Below the pieces are notes generated by a model. That model was not told where the DNA came from, made no database searches, and saw nothing but the letters and a program-made list of their open reading frames with translations. From assembly GCA_002269645.1 (NCBI GenBank), contig NIVC01002873.1, positions 73,037-132,777 on the forward strand: a DNA stretch of 59,741 bases. The letters are read 5' to 3'. The position numbers were made by a program, and so were the translations under genes. This document shows, in pieces, positions 7,815 to 39,683 of the stretch; the first letter of the stretch is position 1, and every line of letters begins with the position of its first letter. This stretch comes from Macrostomum lignano. Taxonomy: Eukaryota.

Positions 7815-9135
7815 ACAAGGCGCGCCTCAAGGTCAGGTCGCGAATGAACGCCACGCCGCCGGCCATATCCGGGGCGCCGGCGTCTGCAGCCAGCAGGCAG
7901 TCGACGAAACGGCGAGTGCGGGCCTGCCCCTTCCAGTAGGGTGCCTGCAGCGTCAGCAGCAGCACCTTCTGCACCGGTTGTGGGCAGTACTACTCGGCGC
8001 GGATGATGTGGCCTGCCAGCTGGAGTCGCCGACGGCGGAACACATCGCTTGGACGGACGAGGCCGGCGCGGCGATATAAAGCCGCGTTGGTCACTTGCTC
8101 GTAGCCGATCTTGAAGGCGGCGCGCAGCAGGCCAGCATGCGCCGCGTCAACTTGTTGCTAGAGTGGCTCCGTCAGCGTCCAGGTCTCGGCGTTGTACAGC
8201 AGGACGGTCTCGATCACTGCCTGGAACAACGCCGCCCTCTGGCGGTCATGTAAGGCCTCAGACTGCAGGACTGCCCTCACAGAACGAAAGGAGCTCACAG
8301 GCAAGCCCGCGGCGACACCGCAAATCCTCGCGGACACCGGGAACCAGACCACCGAGGTAGACGAACTGCTGACAACGCGGAAGCTCTGCTGTCTCTCTAT
8401 CAGCGCCTCGGCACAAAATCGCAGCCTCGATGTCGTCCGGCACGCAGAGCACGACGATTTTCTGCGTGTTGGCAACTAGGCCGACACTCGCCGCAACAGC
8501 AACTAGCTTTTCCAGCTGTCGCTGGGCAGCCTCGACAGTTGAAGACGACAGTGCGAGATCGTTGGCATAGCCAAGCACGCTGAGCCGTCTCTCCGGTTTA
8601 CGTCGACCCACGCGCTGCCGCAACAGAAAGCCGTGGTCGTAGGTAGGAATAGCGGTCTTCAGCACCCAGTCAAGCACCAGAACGAACAGAAACGGCGCAA
8701 GCGTATCTCCTTGAAGCACCCCGGAGGATGTCTCAAAGAAGTCCGATAGGCGGTACATCACCATGATTGCGGAAATCAGATGCTCTGGCACGCGTTGTAC
8801 GCACGGAGCACCTTTGGGAGCACAGAGCTGATGACCGAGTCGAATGCCTTCTTGAAATCTATGAAGATTACAATTAGGATCGACTGGCGTGTCCGCGCCT
8901 CCTAGATGACTCACCGAAGAGCCAGGATCTGCGTCAATGTGCCGCGATGGGGCCGAAGTCGTTCTGCTCAGGACGCACGTACGGATCGAGCACGGGCTGC
9001 AACCGCGATAGCAGCATCGCAGCGCAGGACTGAAGGCAGATACCTCGATGCTCCTCAAGCCTTGTGGTGCCCGGCTTCTTAGGAATTGTGACGATGTGCG
9101 TCTTAAAAAGATCGTCATTGTCATGCACTTCACCG
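7815..9135 (-). mobile_element. Degenerate 5'-truncated RTE-type non-LTR retrotransposon (reverse transcriptase and C-terminus)
   Basis: Frameshifted pieces THIVTIPKK..EHRGICL, GVLQGDTLAPFLF, LGYANDLAL (YADD mutated), FVYLGG, VLLYNAETWTL, LQLAGHIIR. Confidence 0.9.
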
Positions 9136-12100
9136 TTTTGCTTTCGAATTCGAAAAAATGAGCCTTCAATTTTGATACTTCGCAGGAAAAAACGATACTA
9201 CAATCAATTCTGACAAAATCCATTCTAGTGTAATGCACGAGCCGAACCTTCATAATTCAGTTGCCTGAATTGTATATTTTTATATTCATTGTATATTCAT
9301 CACCTTTTCTCCTTTTCCTTATTCTAATTTTTGCAAGCTGAAATTGATAAATTATGAATCTAGTTATTCGTTTTTCATGGTTAGGGTGCATAATAATGTT
9401 TTTCAATACGAGTACATGTATAAATTCGTGAAGTTTGTCATCTCTGATTAAGTCACTTTATACACATACAAAAGTACATCGTAGACTTTTCGAGTTCAAG
9501 TTGGCGCGGTTTTGCAACGACACGATATAAAATATGGTAGCAATCCCCAAAAAAGCTTTATTTTCAGAAGATCCAGGTTTCTATGCTTTTCTACTCGTAG
9601 TGCAGATTTTTCTTAACCGATCGAATTTGTCTATTTAATTACGTACATGCAGTACAAACTCTTTTGATCACGCAATTTGATCCCTTATTCTACTGATCAA
9701 GTCGTTCCTAAGGGGATGCAATAGATTGAAAAAATGCCAAGATTCTGTAGTAGATTTTGTTTAATATGCATTCGAGCCATTCGAAATGCATTTGCAGCGA
9801 TTATAATTGCGTTCTCTATCTAACTAAGTATAATTCATTTTCTGAGACACTCAACCAGACAAATTCAAGTGCAATTTCTTGTTCTCCTTATCAAGCTATA
9901 CGTCGTACATGTACATATGTATTGTAATTCAAGGAATGCTGAGCTGATTTTTTATATAACATTATAAAAAGTGTGCACGCAGATATTTCAGTCAGTTTAA
10001 TCACCGTTACAAGCTTTGCTGCTTAAATTTTGAATCGTCATTTCAAGCGGCTTGCTTGCAACGTGCGCATGAATCCCACTGGCTGTAATGCATGGATTGT
10101 AACTCAACATTTAGAAAATCGACAGGAACCAGAAGCGCCTGTGCAAATAAACACCTGTATCGGTTGCTTATGCTGAAACCTACGCAGAAAGTTGAATTTG
10201 AAGCGAGCATCGGGACAAATGCTGCTTTGTTTTATAGATACGAGTGCGTGTAGATCGCTGTTTATACTCAACTGCACCTGCACCCCGAGGAGACCGGCGG
10301 GTTTATTCCCTGAGCTTTTGCCACATTCCTATTCAAGTCCTGATTCAACGACCGCTGGGGTATCAAATTGTAAGAGGAAAGCAAAAGTGCTAGTACAATA
10401 TGTAGCACTTAAATTATCGACTACTAAATTACGCTCGTACTATACGTTACCACCACCACTACGGGTCCTAGTGCTTTTAATTGTAATTTTAAGTTAAGTT
10501 CTAATTATTGAATGGCAATAGTCAAGAAGAGAGTGAAAAATCATCCAAAGTGAGGCTGTTAAGACTGTCAAACATTCAACCAAGGTAAATAGTTATACTG
10601 CTTTTTTCTTGGCAGATCCGAACCAATTCTATATAGTTCTGGTATTGTAATGTGAAAAGCCTGTAGGCGTTAAAATATAAACAAAATGTCTGCCTCTTTT
10701 AGCGAAATTCAAGTAAAAAAAATAAAAATCAACTTTTCTTAAAACATTTACTCAACTTAAGAATAAGCAAGTGGAAGAAACAGTATGAAAATTGCAATTT
10801 AAAAAACGTTTTCATTTCAAATAGCAAATTTCTTATTTTGTCTTGCTCAGATTCTGTGGTGGCGAATTGTTTTAAAAAAATAATGAAGTGATAATGATTC
10901 GCTAGTGAAATGTGAATAATATGATGCCATACTTGGATAACAGTGATGCTGATGCAGGTGAACTTTACATTACTACATTCTGCTTGTATTTTTATGAAAT
11001 AAGCCTAGTCGATTTATTTCTAAAAGTAATAAATAATGAATATCAACGAATAGTCGAATACGACTATACGAGTAGGCATTCAAATTGAGCTTAGCCTTAG
11101 ACCTAAGGTAGATCCCAAAACCCCATCCGATCAGATAGGCATCCCCATGTTAAAATTCTTGCTCAAAATTTGAAGAAAACGTTTGTTTACTAAGAAAACC
11201 TGCATACTTGCATCAATGCATCACAAAATAAAATGGAATTGCATACAATTCAAGTGTACATTCTTTTGCTAAGGTGATAATAATGAATGTTAATATAGTC
11301 TATATTCTCAAAAATCTTAATAATATTATCTAGCCAGATCATTGTAGGCATATGCAGGAATGAAAATTTTAGCTTTTTTGTAGGCCTAAGCCTAATTTCT
11401 AGTTAAAGCTCAATTTAAATGGCAGTGTTTTTCAAAATTTTAAGGAGTCTTAACTCTAATTCAGTTTTTGTATATAAGCTGCTTATTATTAATAAACCAG
11501 TTATTAACTTAATATCAATGACTAGATATGGCAATACCATTGCCAATAAATCAATATTAGGTCTAGGCCTAGAAAAAATTAAGAAATGCCCTTTGTTAAA
11601 AAAGACCTAGAAATTGCAAGAGGGACAGAACAATTTTTCCAAAATATAAGATAATCACTTAGGTACTATCATATTAAAAAAACAAACTGAACAAATACTT
11701 GGCATTTCAATAGTTAGGCCCCTAGTAATCTTTTACCTTTGTATATTTAATTATTTTCTTAAAAGGTTTCTAAAGTGACAGTTTGTGGTTTGTTAGCTTG
11801 TTAACTATGTGGGGTTTGTTGCTTGGGGCCTAACTCTATTCAATTAAACTTTAAATTCAGTCAACCTAGTTACTTGACTTTATTTAGTTTGTATCTTGCC
11901 TTTGTGATCAACATGTTCTATATACTCTGTAAACTAATACACATTCTATGCAATTCAGTATACATTATTGCACTAGCTTTGCCTTGCCTTTAAAGTCTTT
12001 CCACTTACTCAGCCATGCCATGCATCAGTGCAATTCAATATTCACAATATATAACCTATTGCTCTTGATCTGTGTCTCATCAAGTAACTTGTACTATTCT

Positions 12101-13481: not shown

Positions 13482-18858
<5,377 letters not shown>

Positions 18859-19217: not shown

Positions 19218-19405
19218 CAGAGACAGACAGACAGACAAGCAGACAGACAGGCAGGCAGATAGTCAGACACACAAGCAGACAGACAGACAGACAAGCAGAC
19301 AGACAGGCAGACAGACAGACACACAGGCAGACAGACAGACAGTCAGACACACAGGCAGACAGTCAGACAGACAGGCAGACAGACAGACAGGCAGACAGAC
19401 AGACA
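19218..19405. repeat. (GACA/GGCA)n microsatellite upstream of Pcl
   Basis: Read directly from sequence. Confidence 0.95.
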
Positions 19406-19549: not shown

Positions 19550-21149
19550 ATGAACTCCAGCGGCGAGGCTGGCGGCCTCCAGCGCTGCTTCTGGCGCAGC
19601 CACTCTGGGACGGTGCTGCCGGCCGAGATTCTGGGCAGCCAGCCCGGGCCCGGCCGCCAGAAGCTGCTGCTGCTCCGGCTGTCCGACACCGGCCAGCGCC
19701 GCCTAGCGCGAGCTCGGGACACCTGGCCGTGCCGGTCCGCGCCCGCCGGCGCCTGTCAGAAATGCCGGCAGAAGGCGGCAGAACCAGCAGCGCTGGTCTG
19801 CCAGGAGTGCCGCAATGTCTACCATCGGCACTGCGGCCTGCTGGACCCGGCGCAGACCGAAGGCTATCCCAGCGGCTTCTTCCGGTGCCGCAACTGCTGC
19901 TTCCGGTTGGCTGTCGGGCCGCTGGGCGCTGCATCCGACGGTCGCGACGGCCGAATGCTGCGGGCGGTGAAGCGGCAGCTGGAGTACAGCGTGGCTCAGC
20001 TGAGCTGGCCCAGCGATCTGGAGAACTCGGACAATGTCTACTGCTACTGCGGCGGGCCCGGCAACGCCGCCTACGGCATGCTGCGGTGCATCGCCTGCAA
20101 ACAGCATTTCCACTTGGCCTGCTTGCAGGACCTGCCCGACTGGATGCGGCATGGGCTGGTGCCCTGGGATCGGTGAGCTGTGTCTGATTGCAGATGCTCA
20201 ATTTAGGGGGCTAATCCTCTCAGATCCCCAATTTGAGTAGCTGATCCTCTCAGATCCCCAATTTGAGTAGCTGATCCTCTCAGATCCCCAATTTGAGTAG
20301 CTGATCCTCTCAGATCCCCAATTTGAGTAGCTGATCCTCTCAGATCCCCAATTTGAGTAGCTAATCCTCTCAGATCCCCAATTTGAGCAGCTAATCTTCT
20401 CAGATCCCCAGTTTGAGTAGCTGATCCTCTCAGATCCCCAGTTTGAGTAGCTGATCCTCTCAGATCCCCAGTTTGAGTAGCTAAACCTTCAGATCGCCAA
20501 TTTGAGTAGCTGATCCTCTCAGATCCCCAATTTGAGTAGCTAATCCTCTCAGATCCCCAGTTTGAGTAGCTGATCCTCTCAGATCCCCAGTTTGAGTAGC
20601 TAAACCTTCAGATCGCCAATTTGAGTAGCTGATCCTCTCAGATCCCCAATTTGAAGAGCTAATCCTCAGTCCTCAATTCGGAGAGCTAAGGTTAGGAGTG
20701 CACTATTATAGATCGAAAACAATTCCGCAACCGCAAATTCCCTTTCGGCTCCCAGTTGGCTGGTTGCTGCGCGGGTAGCTTCACACCAGTCAGACTGGGC
20801 TATATTTAGCTCCTCAGTCCTCTGCTTCAAAGCACGCCTTGTTGTCGTCTCTAAGACGGCAAGTGCAGTGACAAATCGCTGTGTTCTTAGCGACAAATCC
20901 ACCTGCGCCCCCAACTCAGCTATTTTTATCTGGCAATGTTGCTCATGTCGCTTATTTTGGTGCATGCCAAACTGCAGAGTATTGAAAAATATTAATTAAG
21001 GCTGACAGGGCTGCCGAATATTGAGGCTGCTTGGGGGCAGACAGCCAGCCAGACAGACAGACAGACAGACAGACAGACAGGCAGGCAGGCAGAGAGAAAG
21101 ACAGACAGCAGACAGACAAACAGACAGACAGGCAGGCAGGCAGGCAGGC

Positions 21150-22294: not shown

Positions 22295-24656
22295 GCCTGT
22301 CTGTCTGTCTGTCTGCCTGCCTGCCTGCCTGCCTGTCTGTCTGTCTGTCTGTCTGTCTGTCTTTCTCTCTGTCTGTCCGTCTGTGTCCGTTCGTCTGTCC
22401 TGTGTACCAGATCTCTCCAAGTCAAATCCTGATCCCATTTAACTCCAGTTTGGTCCGCAATTTCCCTTTTCATGTCCAGGTGGTCCAGTCCTTGTCCAGC
22501 CACACCAAGCGTTTCCAGCCGGTTGTCATGACAACGGGCGACACGCTGTACCGGCCGATCTGCCCGCTGCGGCCCCCCGTGGTGACGCCGCCGCAGCCGG
22601 GCAGCCACCTGGCCCGCGTCAACTGGGCCGCCCGCATCTCCTATGCGCCGCCGCGCGGCGACCTTCCGCCGGCCTTGCTGCGGGACCCGGCCGCGCCCGG
22701 CCCCGAGGAGGCCGACGCCATCGCCGCCGCCACCGCGGCTGCCGTCTCCTTGAAGCCGAACTCCGTTGCTAATAACAATAATTTGAACTCGAAAGCTCGC
22801 AAAGCCTTCGCCAAACCAGAAGCTGACAGCGGCTCCAACAGTGAAGACAGCTGCTTGGATGTCGGAGACGACCAGCTGCAGGACGCCGATTTTAAGCCTG
22901 GCAGCAGCGGCGCCGACATGGCTTCTTTGAAATCCGCCGGCTCGCCGCAGTCCTCGTCCGCCGCGTCCCAGGCGCTGACGGCTGGGTGAGCGGATGCTGG
23001 GGATTAGTGATGGTGCGGATTAGTGATGCTAGGGATAAGCGATGCTTGGGATTAGTGATGCTGGGGATTAGTGATGCTAGGGATTAGCGATGCTTGGGAT
23101 TAGTGATGCTGGGGATTAGTGATGCTGGGGATTAGTGATGGTGCGGATTAGTGATGCTGGTGATTAGTGATGGTGCGGATTAGTGATGCTGGGGATTAGT
23201 GATGGTGCGGATTAGTGATGCTGGGGATTAGTGATGCTGGCGATTAGTGGTGGTGCGGATTAGTGATGCTGGGGATTAGTTATAGTGCGGATTAGCGATG
23301 CTGGGGATTAGTGATAGTGCGGATTAGCGATGCTGGGGATTAGTGATGCTGGGGATTAGTGATGCTGGGGATTAGCGATGGTGCGGATTCCAATCCATTC
23401 AGACCCCATATAACGACTCGAACCGCCGACCCTCCAGGCGAGCTCAGTTCGGCAGGCAGCAGCGCCGCAATTTGCAGCAGCAGCAGCGCCGCCGCGGCCG
23501 CCCGCTGCTGAACCTGCCGCGCCGGCGCCCTGACCAGCCCGCGTCGACATCGGCAGCAGCGGCAGCTCGAGGCGCCAAACGAGTCGCCGCTGACGAGGAC
23601 GCCGAGCAACAGCCCGCCAGCAAGCGGCGGCGCGGCAGGAAGCCTCAACGGCAGCGCCAGGCAGCGCCGAGACGCCAGCAGCTGGTCGAGGACAGCGACG
23701 GAGAGCTGGCGAAGGTTCGCCGGTCTGGCATTCTGGACAGCGACAGCGATGAGCAGTCCTACCACAGCGCTGACTTCAACACCTCCGAGGACGACAGCGG
23801 CGACGAGGATTTTGTTGTCCGCGGTGTTGGCGGCTCCCGTCGGCCTCGGCCGGTCGTCGAAGGCCGTCAGCGTCGTGGTCGAGGCCGTCCGCCCAGTGCC
23901 AGCACCGTCCGACTTCAGCAGCAACAGCAGCGGCGACGTCAGCAGCAACGGCTGCGGCTGAATTCTAGCGACCTGGACTCCGTCGGGTATATCGAAGACG
24001 GCGACGGCCGAGATGATATCGATGACGACGAGGACGCCAAATCCGCCGCTTCTACAGCCGGCGCTGCCGCTCCCGACGCATCGGCAGCCGCTGCTGGCGT
24101 CCCGGACGATTCCGGCCGAGACGATGTTGGCGGCGATGTTGTTGACCGGCCGTCTACGCAGCCGAAGCCGCCGCCGCCACCGCCGTCCCGACGTCGGCCG
24201 CCAAAGTCTCGCCGAAGTGCCTCTGGGCCCGGCCGGCCTCGCGGCTCTTCAACGGCGTCCCGCGCATCGGCGCCGTCCGCCCAGCCGTCGTCGTCGACTT
24301 GTTCACCGACACTGCCTTCGCCGCCGATCCGTTCGGTGGCCGACAGCGCCGCCTCCGTGCTGTCCTTCATTCCGCCCGCCCAGCGACACCCGTTCCGCCT
24401 GCCCTGGGAGCTGCCGGTGCACACCGACGTCCGCGTCAGGCGGTCTCTCTGGCTGCAGGTGCACGCCCTCATGCCGCCGCCACCGCCACCGGAGCTGCCA
24501 GCAAAGCTGTCTGAACTGGAGGCTCGGCTAGACGTGGCCTGCCGGTCCAGACAGGGCTCGCCAAGGAAACTACTGATAGGCCAGCTGATGGGCACCAGGG
24601 AAAGGCGTCTGCCCGACGGGAAGACAACCGTTGACTCGCTGTTCCGCTGGTGGTGA
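19550..24656 (+). CDS. Pcl: Polycomb-like protein (PHF1/MTF2/PHF19 family): Tudor-like, PHD1, PHD2, winged-helix/EH, C-terminal chromo-like; 4 exons, 860 aa
   Basis: Exons 19550-20172, 21861-22095, 22480-22985 and 23438-24656 with concordant phases (2,0,2; total 2583 nt). Family motifs [46 protein letters not shown] (formed across intron 1), [17 protein letters not shown], and C-terminal RRLPDGK..LFRW. Confidence 0.92.
20205..20665. repeat. 30-bp repeat (GATCCTCTCAGATCCCCAATTTGAGTAGCT), about 15 copies, Pcl intron 1
   Basis: Read directly from sequence. Confidence 0.95.
21040..21790. repeat. (GACA/GGCA)n microsatellite, Pcl intron 1
   Basis: Read directly from sequence; explains the spurious QTDR and CLSV ORFs. 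Confidence 0.97.
22122..22385. repeat. (GTCT)n microsatellite, Pcl intron 2 (opposite orientation to the intron 1 tract)
   Basis: Read directly from sequence. Confidence 0.95.
22993..23388. repeat. ~16-bp repeat (GGGATTAGTGATGCTG and variants) filling Pcl intron 3
   Basis: Starts about 7 nt after the donor at 22986. Confidence 0.95.
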
Positions 24657-26224: not shown

Positions 26225-28190
26225 TTAGCGATGGAATGTACATTGTGCAGCCAATCAAGTACACTGATTAGCGATGGAATGTACATTGCGCAGCCAATCA
26301 AATAGACTGATTAGCGATGGAATGTACATTGTGCAGCCAATCAAATAGACTGATTAGCGATGGAATGTACATTGTGCAGCCAATCAAGTAGACTGATTAG
26401 CGATGGAATGTACATTGCGCAGCCAATCAAGTAGACTGATTAGCGATGGAATGTACATTGTGCAGCCAATCAAATAGACTGATTAGCGATGGAATGTACA
26501 TTGTGCAGCCAATCAAGTAGACTGATTAGCAATGGAATGTACATTGCGCAGCCAATCAAATAGACTGATTAGCGATGGAATGTACATTGTGCAGCCAATC
26601 AAATAGACTGATTAGCGATGGAATGTACATTGTGCAGCCAATCAAGTAGACTGATTAGCGATGGAATGTACATTGCGCAGCCAATCAAGTAGACTGATTA
26701 GCGATGGAATGTACATTGTGCAGCCAATCAAATAGACTGATTAGCGATGGAATGTACATTGTGCAGCCAATCAAGTAGACTGATTAGCGATGGAATGTAC
26801 ATTGCGCAGCCAATCAAATAGACTGATTAGCGATGGAATGTACATTGCGCAGCCAATCAAATAGACTGATTAGCGATGGAATGTACATTGTGCAGCCAAT
26901 CAAGTAGACTGATTAGCGATGGAATGTACATTGCGCAGCCAATCAAATAGACTGATTAGCGATGGAATGTACATTGTGCAGCCAATCAAATAGACTGATT
27001 AGCGATGGAATGTACATTGTGCAGCCAATCAAGTAGACTGATTAGCGATGGAATGTACATTGTGCAGCCAATCAAGTAGACTGATTAGCGATGGAATGTA
27101 CATTGTGCAGCCAATCAAATAGACTAATTAGCGATGGAATGTACATTGTGCAGCCAATCAAGTAGACTGATTAGCGATGGAATGTACATTGTGCAGCTAA
27201 TCAAATAGACTGATTAGCGATGGAATGTACATTGTGCAGCCAATCAAATAGACCGATTAGCGATGGAATGTACATTGTGCAGCCAATCAAGTAGACTGAT
27301 TAGCGATGGAATGTACATTGTGCAGCCAATCAAGTAGACTGATTAGCGATGGAATGTACATTGTGCAGCCAATCAAGTAGACTGATTAGCGATGGAATGT
27401 ACATTGTGCAGCTAATCAAATAGACTGATTAGCGATGGAATGTACATTGTGCAGCCAATCAAGTAGACTGATTAGCGATGGAATGTACATTGTGCAGCTA
27501 ATCAAATAGACTGATTAGCGATGGAATGTACATTGTGCAGCCAATCAAATAGACCGATTAGCGATGGAATGTACATTGTGCAGCCAATCAAGTACACTGA
27601 TTAGCGATGGAATGTACATTGCGCAGCCAATCAAATAGACTGATTAGCGATGGAATGTACATTGTGCAGCCAATCAAATAGACTGATTAGCGATGGAATG
27701 TACATTATGCAGCCAATCAAGTAGACTGATTAGCGATGGAATGTACATTGTGCAGCCAATCAAGTAGACTGATTAGCGATGGAATGTACATTGTGCAGCC
27801 AATCAAATAGACTGATTAGCGATGGAATGTACATTGCGCAGCCAATCAAATAGACTGATTAGCGATGGAATGTACATTGTGCAGCCAATCAAGTAGACTG
27901 ATTAGCGATGGAATGTACATTATGCAGCCAATCAAGTAGACTGATTAGCGATGGAATGTACATTGTGCAGCCAATCAAGTAGACTGATTAGCGATGGAAT
28001 GTACATTGTGCAGCCAATCAAATAGACTGATTAGCGATGGAATGTACATTATGCAGCCAATCAAGTAGACTGATTAGCGATGGAATGTACATTGTGCAGC
28101 CAATCAAGTAGACTGATTAGCGATGGAATGTACATTGTGCAGCCAATCAAATAGACTGACTGTATCATGATTGAATGTACATTGTACGCT
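26225..28190. repeat. 43-bp satellite, about 45 copies, containing AGCCAATCA and the palindrome AATGTACATT
   Basis: Period of 43 (26227 to 26270). Confidence 0.97.
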
Positions 28191-31539: not shown

Positions 31540-31689
31540 AGACAGAAACAAAGACAGACAGACTCAGACAGACACACAGACAGACACAGACAGACACACA
31601 GACAGACACACAGACAGACACACAGACAGACACACAGACAGACAGACAGACAGACAGACACTAAGACAGACAGAAAGACAGACACTAAA

Positions 31690-31720
<31 letters not shown>

Positions 31721-31765
31721 TACAGACAGACAGACATACAGACAGACAGACAGACAGACAGACAT

Positions 31766-31824
<59 letters not shown>

Positions 31825-31845
31825 TACAGACAGACAGACTGCCAG
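31540..31845. repeat. (GACA)n microsatellite
   Basis: Read directly from sequence. Confidence 0.95.
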
Positions 31846-32821
31846 ACTGGGGGTGGACCGAGGTTCCTCGGGCCTCGAGGTCGACGAGGCTGGCCCAGAC
31901 GGCGTCGATCATCGTGGCGCCCGTCGACCCGGGGCCGGACGCGAGCGCGCTTAGCGGGCTCAGGGAGTCAGAGCAGATGCGGACCGACAGCTCTCCCGGG
32001 TCCGGGGCCGCGAGCACCCACCGAAGGGCCTCAGCGATGGCCACTAACTCGGCGCGGAAGCTGGACGTCACGTGGCCAGCAGCGACGCACAGCGTGGTGT
32101 TGGGCTCGACCAGGATGCCGCTGCCGCCGTCCAGGATGCCATCCTTCGCCGCTCCGTCGGTCCAGACCACGGTGCCAGCGGGCGGCAGGGCGGCAAGCGT
32201 CTGCTCCGCCGCGGCTCTCCGGGCCTCCGGCAGGTCCCCCGGGAGGCCAGCTGGGTGCCTGGCCACGCGGGAATCCCCGGCAACGAGGCCGTGGACGAGA
32301 TCGCCAAGCGAGGCTCCTCGCTGGCGCAAGGCACCGCGCCCGTGCCGTTGGCTGCCGCGCAGGCTGCCGTCCGCCGCCACTGCCTCGCCCGCTGGCACCA
32401 GATCTACAACGCGGCGGCCACCGAGGCGGCGAGCACGAGCTCGCTTGCCTGGCACCTTGCCTGCACGGCGGGCCGCCTGCCGCCTCAGCCGACGAGTGAC
32501 CTCACGCGGCGGCAGGAGCGGCTGATCTGCCAGCTGCGCGCCGACCGCTGCCCGGCCTTGCGAGGCTTCCAGGCCGCCATCGGTGTTGATGTGGCCCCCA
32601 CCTGCCGCTTCTGTGGCGATGGAGAGGAGACGGCGGCCCATCTGCTAATCTCCTGCCCCGCCCTGACTCCACACCGCTGCCGCCTCTGGGGGCCAAGCCC
32701 GGAGCTCGCGGCAGTTTTCGAGAACTGCGTCGCGGTGTTGAACTTCCTCGGGAAGGCGGGCGCCGTCTGACGCCCGGTGCCATGGGCCCTGGCCCGAGCA
32801 CGCCCGAAGAAGAAGAAGAAG
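31846..32821 (+). mobile_element. Young 5'-truncated, 5'-inverted RNase H-bearing non-LTR retrotransposon (I group) with (GAA)5 tail
   Basis: Minus strand 32251 to 31846 encodes VWTDG, SSFRAELVAI, ICSDS...VHPQ. Plus strand from 32252 encodes WVPGHAGIPGNEAVDEIAK...CRFC..HLLISC, with a stop at 32768-32770 and a GAA tail at 32806-32821. No internal stops in either piece. Confidence 0.92.
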
Positions 32822-32990
32822 CTCGGGACACCTGGCCGTGCCGGTCCGCGCCATCCGGCGCCTGTCAGAAATGCCGTCAGAAGGCGGCCGAACCGGCCGG
32901 GTCAGCGCTGGTCTGTCAGGAGTGCCGCAATGTCTACCATCGGCGCAGACCGAAGGCTATCCTTGCGGCTGCTTCCGGTGCCGCAACTGC
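32820..32990 (+). pseudogene. Relic of a Pcl paralogue exon 1 (PHD1 region)
   Basis: Aligns to 19711-19897 with a 6-nt in-frame insertion, a 22-nt deletion (between CGG microhomologies) and about 10 substitutions. Confidence 0.9.
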
Positions 32991-33723
32991 ATGCGGCTTC
33001 CGCAACCGGCGACTCCATCTGCCGTCATGTCTGATCTCCCCCAGTTAACTGGTCACTAGAGTGCCTCTCTAGAGTGGCAAATGGCATCAGGCCTGCTCCA
33101 TTGTTCACGACGGCCCGGATGCGAGCAAAGAAACTCAAGTAGCAGGGGAAGTCGATACAGACAGAGCTTTGCCCTTGCCTTCAGAACCCAACGCCACTTC
33201 AATGTCTTCAATCAGGGCGGCTGATCTGTCACCAGAGGCCTGTGGCGGCACCAATGCCTAACATGCAGGTCCCCCGCAGCACACCTCCCAGTCCCCGAAG
33301 TTCCCGAATCCTTTTCAGCAGTGCGGGATGAGAAGGACGGATAATATATGTAAAAAGAGCGGAACAGCTGATAAGCCAGCAAATGTATGAGTTGGGAGCA
33401 TTTATGCCATCTCTAATTATATTTGCAAGCGGAAAAGGTTATATTGGCTCAATAACTTACTCGGGCACACACAAATGTACATGCAAATGCAACCCTGCTG
33501 CTCACTGAAGAGCACCATTTTATACGCAAAGAAAAACACTCGATCTTCCTCATTTGACCTTTGTCGAGCTGGATAAAACGGAATACGAGTAAGTCTGCAG
33601 CAGTTCTAATTGCACATGGAGTATTCCAGTCCATCTGCTGACAGAGGTTCTCCTACAGAAAACTGAAGTGCAGGTAAATTCGCTGAGTACTTGGGTCCTG
33701 AGCACACAGTGCAGCTATACAAG

Positions 33724-38116: not shown

Positions 38117-39683
38117 TTAAGCAATGAAGGCTCTGAGGCTGGCTAGGATGCCGGCGCCACATTTCGGACAGCTGGCCCTGTGCGACAAGCAGCCTGTGCA
38201 CAGCAGGAAGTGGGCACACGGCAGGGTCACTTGGGAGCGGCGCGCGGACTGGCAGGAGACGCACTGGTCTGATGACGGGACCTCAGCGGAGCTGGCTGCC
38301 TTGGAGCTGCAGCTGTCGGTGCCTGGTGAGTTATTTTGCTCCTGCAACTGCTGCTGCTGCTGCTGCTGCAGCGGACTGGGAGCCTGCGACCTGGCCGGCA
38401 GTGCTGCTGCTGCTGAGCACATCGGCGTCTCCAGCTGCTGCTCGTCGCGCGGCTGGCAAGCCTCAGTCAGAGCCAGCTCGATGTCAATCACGGCGCCGCT
38501 GTGCAGCAGAGCGTCCAGCGTGGCTTCGGACTGGTGCAGCAGCTGGATGATGTCTCCCGGCCGGCTGCCGCTGAGCACCCTGCCATCCCGGCTGCGCATG
38601 AACTCCCGGCACACCGCGAAGGCAACCTGGCGACGGTCGAATCCGTAGGAGGTCACGTGACCCAGCAGCTCGGAGCGGACGAAGAAGTCTTTGAACAGTT
38701 TGGCGCAGGCCCGGCGCAGCTTTGTAGCGTCTTCGACGGGCACCGCGCCGCTGTCGGCCGCCTGCAGGAAGCGCGCGAGCTGGCAAGCCGGGCTGCTGCT
38801 CAGGTGCAGCCGCAGGGCATCCGCAGCGGCGTCAGGCAGCTGCTGACAGCGAAGGCCGCAGTGGAAGCAGGTCGCCAATAATTTGCCTTTGTTCCGAACG
38901 TCCTCGTCGTCAGCAGCCTGAAAGTAAAATCCGGCATCGCTCCAGCCGGCTGCTTGCGTCTGGTCTCTGTTCTCAGAGTCTTTGTTGCTGTTATTGTTGT
39001 GGTCTCTGCCGCAGTTGCGGCTCTCGTCGAGCAGCAGAGAGCGAATTCGAGTTTGAGACGCCAGAAACTCCGGGTGCCGAGCGGCGGTGGCCACGAATAT
39101 CAAACAGCCTAACGGTAAATTTGTAATTAGCGGTAATAAGATTGGATTGTATTGTGTGAAGTACTATACAGTGTACATTGAAAACCGCCACTACAGAGAC
39201 TGGCAGAGTGATTGATTGACTTCAGCTCACTATCACTGCAAATGACGTCAAGTTTTCCAACTCGCTCTGCGCACTGCGTCTTTGATGGCGATTGTCAACG
39301 TACGCTACGCTACTATTGTGCAATTCTGTGATTACTACTGTAAATAGTAGTATTGGGCTATTTCTCGACCTATCAAATTGGATCTTAGAATTGTACATCA
39401 TCGCATGGTGGCAGGGTGGACCCGTCGGCGCACTGCAAGAAGACGCAGGTGCGGTGGGCACCTTAATAATCTATTGGCAGGGAAACAAGCTCAGCAATGG
39501 AGACTTACATAGGCAGTAGACCATCGCCTCAGCGCTTTGGCGACTAAACCGATCGAGTTTGGCAGCTGAACTGCCGCTGAACATCACGGACGTCAGCTGA
39601 GCAACTGCTGAGCCGCATTTGCGGCTGGAACTCCCCAGCTGCTGCTGATGATGCTGGCTGGAATGGCTGGCTGTGCTTAGCAT
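38117..39683 (-). CDS. IAP-like protein (divergent BIR, UBA-like, C3HC4 RING), 2 exons, 388 aa
   Basis: Exons 39683-39509 and 39108-38117 (phase 1; T|GTAAGT...TTAG|GC; total 1167 nt). BIR: RHPEF..RIRSL, AGFYF, CFHCG..H......C. UBA-like: HVTSYGFDRRQV. RING: CVSC..LPCAHFLLCTGC..CPKC..LRAFIA at the C-terminus. Confidence 0.85.

Follow-up and report, generated by a model that had tools for sequence, protein, structure and literature searches.

A 5'-inverted copy of an RNase H-bearing LINE in the flatworm Macrostomum lignano, most likely formed by twin priming

The LINE fragment and its genomic surroundings

The window, which is the whole stretch of 59,741 nt of Macrostomum lignano DNA that was analysed, contains at 31846-32821 a LINE fragment whose 5' part is inverted relative to its 3' part. 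The fragment and the features around it are as follows.

31540-31847, no strand: (AGAC)n microsatellite of ~77 units, 308 bp, the 5' genomic flank (TRF and sequence)
31846-32821: the whole 5'-inverted LINE copy, 976 bp, a block of 71% GC between the (AGAC)n microsatellite and 32821
31846-32253, minus strand: inverted LINE segment, N-terminal part of RNase H with the active-site residues D, E and D (matches to P0157 and L001, see below)
32247-32254, no strand: inversion junction, 8-nt palindrome CCAGCTGG
32252-32770, plus strand: non-inverted LINE segment, C-terminal part of RNase H (WVPGHAG...NEAVDE), linker, finger and stop (matches to P0157, L004 and L001)
32771-32805, plus strand: short LINE 3'UTR of 35 nt, which aligns with the 3'UTRs of L002 and L004 as far as the tail
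32806-32820, plus strand: (GAA)5 tail, the 3' terminus of the element (comparison with L002 and L004)
32821-32990, plus strand: 3' flank, a degenerate, frame-broken 170-bp copy of a PHD1 sequence with 81% nucleotide identity to 19711-19897 and indels of 6 nt and 22 nt
19550-20173, plus strand: Polycomb-like (PHF1/MTF2/Pcl) host exon with two PHD fingers (Pfam PHD; PDB sequence search)
8258-9253, minus strand: reverse transcriptase (RT) fragment of another LINE (Pfam RVT_1), unrelated to the family studied
16642-17055, minus strand: piggyBac-type transposase fragment (DDE_Tnp_1_7), unrelated to the family studied
38117-39103, minus strand: RING-finger ORF, host coding sequence
47110-47790, plus strand: 14-3-3 exon (Pfam E=4e-100)
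57507-58154, plus strand: collagen-like Gly-X-Y repeats, host coding sequence

The 14-3-3, collagen-like, RING and Polycomb-like content identifies the window as animal DNA. Tandem repeats are very dense (43 TRF rows), many of them minisatellites of 12-80 bp such as that at 26225-28185 (43 bp x 45), and (CAGA/AGAC/GTCT)n occurs at six places, beginning at 19221, 21038, 22123, 31540, 37287 and 54790. Further pieces of the LINE family studied here were not found within the 59,741 nt.

The inverted piece encodes the N-terminal two thirds of RNase H. Its minus-strand reading from 32251 opens with AGLPGDLPEARRAAAEQTLAALPPAGTVVWTDGAAKDG, followed by FRAELVAIAEAL and ICSDSLS, and the stop-free translation of 32251-31847 comprises AGLPGDLPEARR...VVWTDGAA...FRAELVAIAEAL...ICSDSLS...RGTSVHPQ. 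The forward piece, read on the plus strand from 32252 to 32770, is translated as WVPGHAGIPGNEAVDEIAKRG...CRFCGDGEETAAHLLISC...KAGAV, with the stop codon at 32768-70. Residues typical of RNase H are found on both strands: D (32156-58), E (32048-50) and D (31967-69) on the minus strand and H (32264-66) and D (32294-96) on the plus strand. A zf-RVT-like finger of the form CX2C-X7-H-X4-C follows, with C at 32603-05 and 32612-14, H at 32639-41 and C at 32654-56. The four active-site residues and the CCHC finger named in an earlier note on this DNA are therefore present. RNase H and the C-terminal finger are all that this copy retains; it has no RT and is a dead fragment, both 5'-truncated and 5'-inverted.

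The inverted piece itself is tailless. The end that lies towards the 3' side in the element (...GTCCACCCCCAG(T)) is found at 31846/47, adjoining the microsatellite, and so forms the outer genomic junction. Placement of this end at 31846-31849 in the earlier note was right in that the reading ends in Gln, but the Gln codon occupies 31849-31847 and does not include 31846. Base 31846 is A (T in the sense of the element), the same as the first base of the Trp codon.

One domain on two strands and the unsplit relatives

Neither piece alone reaches the family cut-off of the Pfam RNase_H profile, the inverted piece scoring 23.6 bits (profile positions 4-68) and the forward piece 20.7 bits (118-140). 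When joined, they score 50.4 bits in a single stretch over positions 4-140. A PDB sequence search aligned the joined domain with solved retroelement RNase H domains straight through the join. The joined sequence of 307 amino acids has 7659 relatives at E<=1e-3 among 1.84 billion representative proteins, and in 149 of the best 150 of these 7659 the match runs as a single stretch across the join between residues 135 and 136. Since nearly all of these best relatives align unbroken over the join, a chance origin of the split domain is very unlikely. The joined Pfam score and the relatives spanning the join bear out the proposal that one RNase H domain is divided between the strands.

The closest named relative, P0157 (UniRef A0A1I8FZX6), comes from M. 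lignano and is 93.6% identical to the joined element protein. Its residues 407-538 correspond to the inverted piece (90.9% identity) and residues 539-701 to the forward piece (95.7% identity); at the break between 538 and 539 no residue is missing or duplicated. Occurrence of so similar an element in an M. lignano protein record, together with the host itself, a free-living flatworm, agrees with the earlier assignment to an invertebrate. P0157 bears the database name 'Ribonuclease H' and is a chimeric gene model that took in an unsplit copy of this element, with leucine-rich-repeat exons followed by a LINE fragment (C terminus of the RT, RNase H and finger) and then by an EF-hand-like tail. 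The model looks like an annotation artefact caused by transposon insertion.

Unsplit DNA copies are present in three metagenome contigs, L001 and L002 (ENA ERZ27315224 and ERZ27315199) and L004 (JGI 3300022723). The inverted piece, 31846-32246 in this comparison, matches L001 from 822 down to 420 and the forward piece, 32247-32695, matches L001 818-1248 with 81.5% nucleotide identity. In L004 the respective matches are 223 down to 92 and 224-792 (85% nucleotide identity). L002 covers the forward piece and has no match to the inverted piece. All three run ...CAC CTN CAR and then TGG GTN CC... through the break point. The three copies show 70-85% nucleotide identity to the LINE family, and their presence in environmental metagenome assemblies indicates that Macrostomum-like animals were probably in those samples. 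A metagenome scan for further DNA copies yielded two distant loci only.

Both pieces give the same order of relatives, L004 before L001 before L002, and whichever pair is compared, conservation is lower in the N-terminal than in the C-terminal part, from which it follows that both pieces stem from one subfamily. They are also adjacent in the element, as seen in P0157 (538 and 539), L001 (822 and 818) and L004 (223 and 224). Descent from different subfamilies and non-adjacent positions, which the earlier note had named as evidence that would count against its reading, were both looked for and neither was seen.

The 3' end of the element was determined from the same contigs. L002 finishes with the same short 3'UTR and (GAA)7 and L004 finishes with (GAA)6, each followed by unrelated flanking sequence. 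The (GAA)n tract is therefore the terminus of the family and the element ends at 32820/21, so that the (GAA)5 recognized earlier as a tail is a true family 3' end. Full-length relatives at 35-40% identity contain Exo_endo_phos, RVT_1 and RNase_H in one ORF of 1250-1425 amino acids. Judged by this domain content, they are target-primed LINEs with an AP-endonuclease and RNase H, as in the I group, by which the clades I, Nimb, Ingi, LOA, Tad1, R1 and related ones are meant; the source annotations of the relatives were uninformative on clade. One distant full-length relative, P0035 (ENA, 1425 amino acids), has a PHD finger in the N-terminal part of its endonuclease-RT-RNase H ORF.

Junctions, target site and 3' flank

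At the 5' junction the inverted piece, read in the sense of the element, ends GTC CAC CCC CAG T and is followed by the reverse complement of the flank, CTGGCAGTCTGTCT. The final in-phase AGAC unit of the microsatellite occupies 31844-31847, and the 4-nt phase is maintained through AGAC TGCC AGAC at 31836-31847. Because the phase is maintained, AC at 31846-47 may belong to the last repeat unit just as well as to the element. Possible microhomology thus amounts to at most these 2 nt, and not to the 4 nt, ACTG, that had been proposed.

A palindrome is indeed present at the inversion point, but it comprises the 8 nt CCAGCTGG (32247-32254) rather than 6, and it was probably not created by the junction, since CAG CTG appears to encode Gln-Leu of an element-internal 'LQLAS'. 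Compared with L001, the window has one G fewer in a run of G near 32236-32240. In the frame upstream of this run, the inverted piece has CAG CTG GCC TCC CGG (Q L A S R) at its far end, and QLAS matches 'LQLAS(PTS)RGD' of P0157 and CTGCAGCTG of L001. A 1-nt deletion near this end has probably put the last ~6 codons out of frame. It is probable, although not proven by so short a match, that the inverted piece reaches 32253 and that the palindrome belongs to the element. With the same reservation, the 'AGLP' with which the earlier note began its ORF is an out-of-frame translation. TG at 32252-53, the first two bases of the Trp codon, fits both segments and is a possible 2-nt microhomology at the inversion junction.

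The sequence GCCAG[A]CTGGG is found twice, once at either end of the inverted segment (31841-31851 and 32246-32255). Recurrence of its CTGGG part is accounted for by an inverted repeat in the element (CACCC...GGGTG). GCCAG, common to the left flank and the right element, may be due to chance or be a footprint of templated end-joining. An RNA hairpin at the breakpoint, with a CACCC/GGGUG stem and the break in the loop, is predicted in the window and in L001; it was dismissed, the z-score in the window being -0.15 and the hairpin being absent in L002.

Comparison of the 5' flank with either candidate 3' flank revealed no common string of 5 nt or more. The target-site duplication to be expected from twin priming, and normally found with 5'-inverted L1 insertions, is therefore lacking. 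L004, the sole relative with both ends visible, has a duplication of at most 4 nt (AAGT), and short or absent target-site duplications may be usual for this LINE family.

The 3' flank, overlooked in the earlier note, is a fragment of a nearby host gene. The PHD1 fragment lies 13 kb downstream of the intact Polycomb-like exon, which is its parent or its paralogue, and AG at 32820-21 is common to the LINE tail and the fragment. In a PDB sequence search the exon matched PHF1 (E=2e-19), MTF2 (4e-18) and Drosophila Pcl (3e-10); a homologue search with the exon gave no match. The exon ends at a GT splice-donor-like site, followed by presumed introns filled with satellites, and the gene perhaps continues in the GC-rich ORFs at 22400-24656. 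Sensitive blastn and tblastn searches near the insertion for the rest of a duplicated exon uncovered only the 170-bp PHD1 piece, with none on the 5' side. As the 3' flank derives from a gene 13 kb away and has no match on the 5' side, the target site is not simple. From an ATG within the LINE 3'UTR, an ORF of 88 codons (32782-33048, plus strand) extends without a change of frame through the tail, translated as EEEEE, and on into the PHD fragment; this is probably accidental. Assignment of the PHD fragment to a 5' ORF of the LINE itself, as P0035 might suggest, was rejected: the ORF at 19.5 kb matches PHF1/MTF2/Pcl at E=2e-19, and not P0035.

The PHD1 fragment may stem from an old partial duplication, from filler DNA or from co-mobilisation. 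An (AGAC)n array precedes both the LINE locus and the Polycomb-like exon, and the LINE may have landed in an old partial duplicate of the exon, removing ~300 bp ((AGAC)n plus exon block, ~305 bp). This idea is weak because (AGAC)n arrays occur at six places in 60 kb. It is improbable that the fragment was laid down in the same event, in which case reverse transcription or break repair would first have used a host transcript or nearby template before switching to the LINE RNA at its 3' end, with twin priming to follow. Divergence of the fragment from its parent far exceeds that between the LINE and another genomic copy, and published LINE chimeras have the foreign part at the 5' end (PMC13174262). 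Host sequence downstream of a LINE tail is a configuration missing from the published catalogues of L1 chimeras. If the fragment had been co-deposited, such a chimera would represent a route to exon-fragment shuffling in flatworms.

Twin priming and its alternatives

Ostertag and Kazazian reportedly described twin priming in 2001 for 5'-inverted human and mouse L1 insertions. The mechanism predicts a flank, an inverted segment that runs from element position b down to a, and a sense segment that runs from b+1 to the tail (PMC2912911, PMC4245944). All geometric features of this arrangement are found in the Macrostomum copy: the segments are opposite in orientation, the tail is on the sense segment, the two are neighbours in the element, and the inverted piece has its element-3' end at the outer junction. 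A tailless inverted piece with its element-3' end outermost cannot result from an ordinary independent insertion. Twin priming, inferred in the earlier note from the same geometry, remains the best explanation, and we consider it most likely, with a probability of about 0.68, that this LINE copy with its RNase H and (GAA)n tail arose by twin priming in a single retrotransposition event. The possible 2-nt microhomologies at both junctions would fit reports on 5'-inverted L1, in about 70% of which the 5' junction shows microhomology of 2-5 bp (PMC2912911). The points against are the lack of a target-site duplication of 5 nt or more, a target site that is not simple, the fact that there is one copy only, and a 5' junction that adjoins a 308-bp microsatellite, where assemblies can go wrong.

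The anatomy of the copy, the exact adjacency of its segments and the family 3' end are observed directly, and from them the order of events and the priming steps may be reconstructed. One DNA end would prime on the (GAA)n tail, and the RNA would be copied back to the Trp codon of WVPGH, yielding the forward segment. The other DNA end, with the top strand terminating at the (AGAC)n border, would anneal in the same RNA just upstream of the Trp codon, and its extension over ~400 nt towards the 5' end of the RNA would yield the inverted segment. The two cDNA 3' ends would then be joined via ~2 nt of complementarity (TG). The lack of a target-site duplication makes it probable that the two breaks differed from the usual staggered nicks and that the event was blunt or removed target sequence.

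The missing duplication is also the starting point for an alternative in which the element was inserted independently of its endonuclease at a pre-existing double-strand break at the (AGAC)n edge, both ends being primed on one LINE RNA. The break would have been patched with LINE cDNA, possibly together with a copied piece of the nearby Polycomb-like exon as filler, which would amount to twin priming without staggered nicks. The junction lies at the edge of a microsatellite, a 170-bp fragment of a gene 13 kb off adjoins the tail with only AG common at the joint, GCCAG[A]CTGGG at both ends of the inverted segment could be a footprint of templated end-joining, and endonuclease-independent L1 insertions without duplications are known (PMC1920257). 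However, the (GAA)5 family tail is intact as in other copies, a typical sign of normal target-primed initiation; the gene fragment, at 19% divergence from its parent, probably predates the insertion; and with at most 4 nt duplicated in L004 as well, short or absent duplications may be normal for the family. Such break repair is unlikely, yet deserves to be kept in mind.

A still smaller probability attaches to an ordinary 5'-truncated insertion, the first ~400 bp of which were inverted later by a DNA-level rearrangement. A simple inversion would result in the same final order, and CCAG/CTGG quasi-palindromes are present at both ends (31842-50 and 32247-54), but one breakpoint must then coincide, to within 1-2 nt, with the former 5' end of the insert, no inverted repeats are of sufficient length for recombination, and nothing was lost or gained at the internal breakpoint. 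We rate marginally lower, and thus as a slim chance, a false join in a repeat-rich long-read assembly. The window is dense in micro- and minisatellites, one of which touches the 5' junction, and exact-ORF look-ups in other assemblies gave no match; against this, the inversion junction is in unique GC-rich sequence, and the known artefacts of chimeric reads are perfect fold-back duplicates, whereas the two segments here do not overlap and meet to the nucleotide in element coordinates. Snap-back synthesis was discarded because it would leave duplicated sequence, of which there is none. Two independent insertions of the same family, adjoining in opposite orientation, are highly implausible. LINE fragments do often nest, and unrelated LINE RT and piggyBac fragments are found in the window. 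However, the inverted piece lacks the 3' end and tail that target-primed insertions keep, no differing subfamily signatures were seen between the pieces, and coincidence of the element coordinates within 2 nt has a chance of ~5 in >=4000 nt, or ~1e-3, the element length being estimated from the ORF2 of 1250-1425 amino acids in relatives.

Resemblance of the twin-primed Macrostomum copy to 5'-inverted L1 extends to the inverted 5' segment, the sense 3' segment with its tail, the adjacency of the segments in the element, the placing of the inverted segment with its element-3' end facing the 5' genomic flank, and short possible microhomologies at both junctions. It differs from L1 in belonging to another LINE group, with RNase H and with (GAA)n in place of poly(A) as its tail, and in having a flatworm as host. 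Its lack of a target-site duplication, where 5'-inverted L1 insertions nearly always have one of 10-20 bp (PMC4245944, PMC2912911), constitutes a further difference, as does the lack of a deletion or duplication at the internal breakpoint (0-1 nt). About 30% of young mammalian L1 insertions are 5'-inverted (PMC2912911). In a retrotransposition assay in chicken DT40 cells, one 5'-inverted insert was obtained with zebrafish Nimb-2_DR, a LINE of the I group, and its authors emphasized that, this case apart, only L1 in human cells had shown inversions; their systematic comparison revealed that 5' inversions depend on both the LINE and the host, with Nimb-2_DR as the single exception (PMC4245944). 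The Macrostomum copy resembles Nimb-2_DR in being an RNase H-bearing non-L1 LINE with a 5' inversion; the Nimb-2_DR insert shows that the phenomenon is not confined to L1. However, the Nimb-2_DR insert arose de novo in a heterologous cell line, as one among many, whereas the Macrostomum copy is a genomic relic in its natural host.

L1 insertions associated with target deletions and endonuclease-independent L1 insertions (PMC1920257; Gilbert et al. 2002, as cited in PMC13174262) likewise lack a target-site duplication and have flanks unlike each other, but they are often without a normal tail or are 3'-truncated, whereas the Macrostomum copy has the normal tail of its family. As in chimeric LINE-1 insertions with other RNAs (PMC13174262), the LINE is joined directly to a piece of a host gene; unlike in those, the gene fragment follows the LINE tail and is more simply taken as pre-existing flank.

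Two broader statements of the earlier note were not sustained. It had called the insertion recent, but with 71% GC chance open frames are common, in several frames at once; the copy differs in protein by 6% from P0157, has an L to P change in the conserved VHLQ motif and probably a frameshift near the far end of the inverted piece. Nor can one copy demonstrate that a clade uses twin priming; membership in the I group, as given in the earlier note, is putative for this copy, and the 5' inversion of Nimb-2_DR had already been published (PMC4245944). The locus is a real and tidy single example of a mechanism already known, here in another host and another element family, and not a discovery. No frequency can be drawn from one relic copy, which is of value as a prompt for a census of the Macrostomum genome. 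Documentation of twin priming is almost confined to mammalian L1, and a natural case in an RNase H-bearing LINE of a flatworm suggests that distant LINE groups also have access to second-end priming, even when no long target duplication is made.
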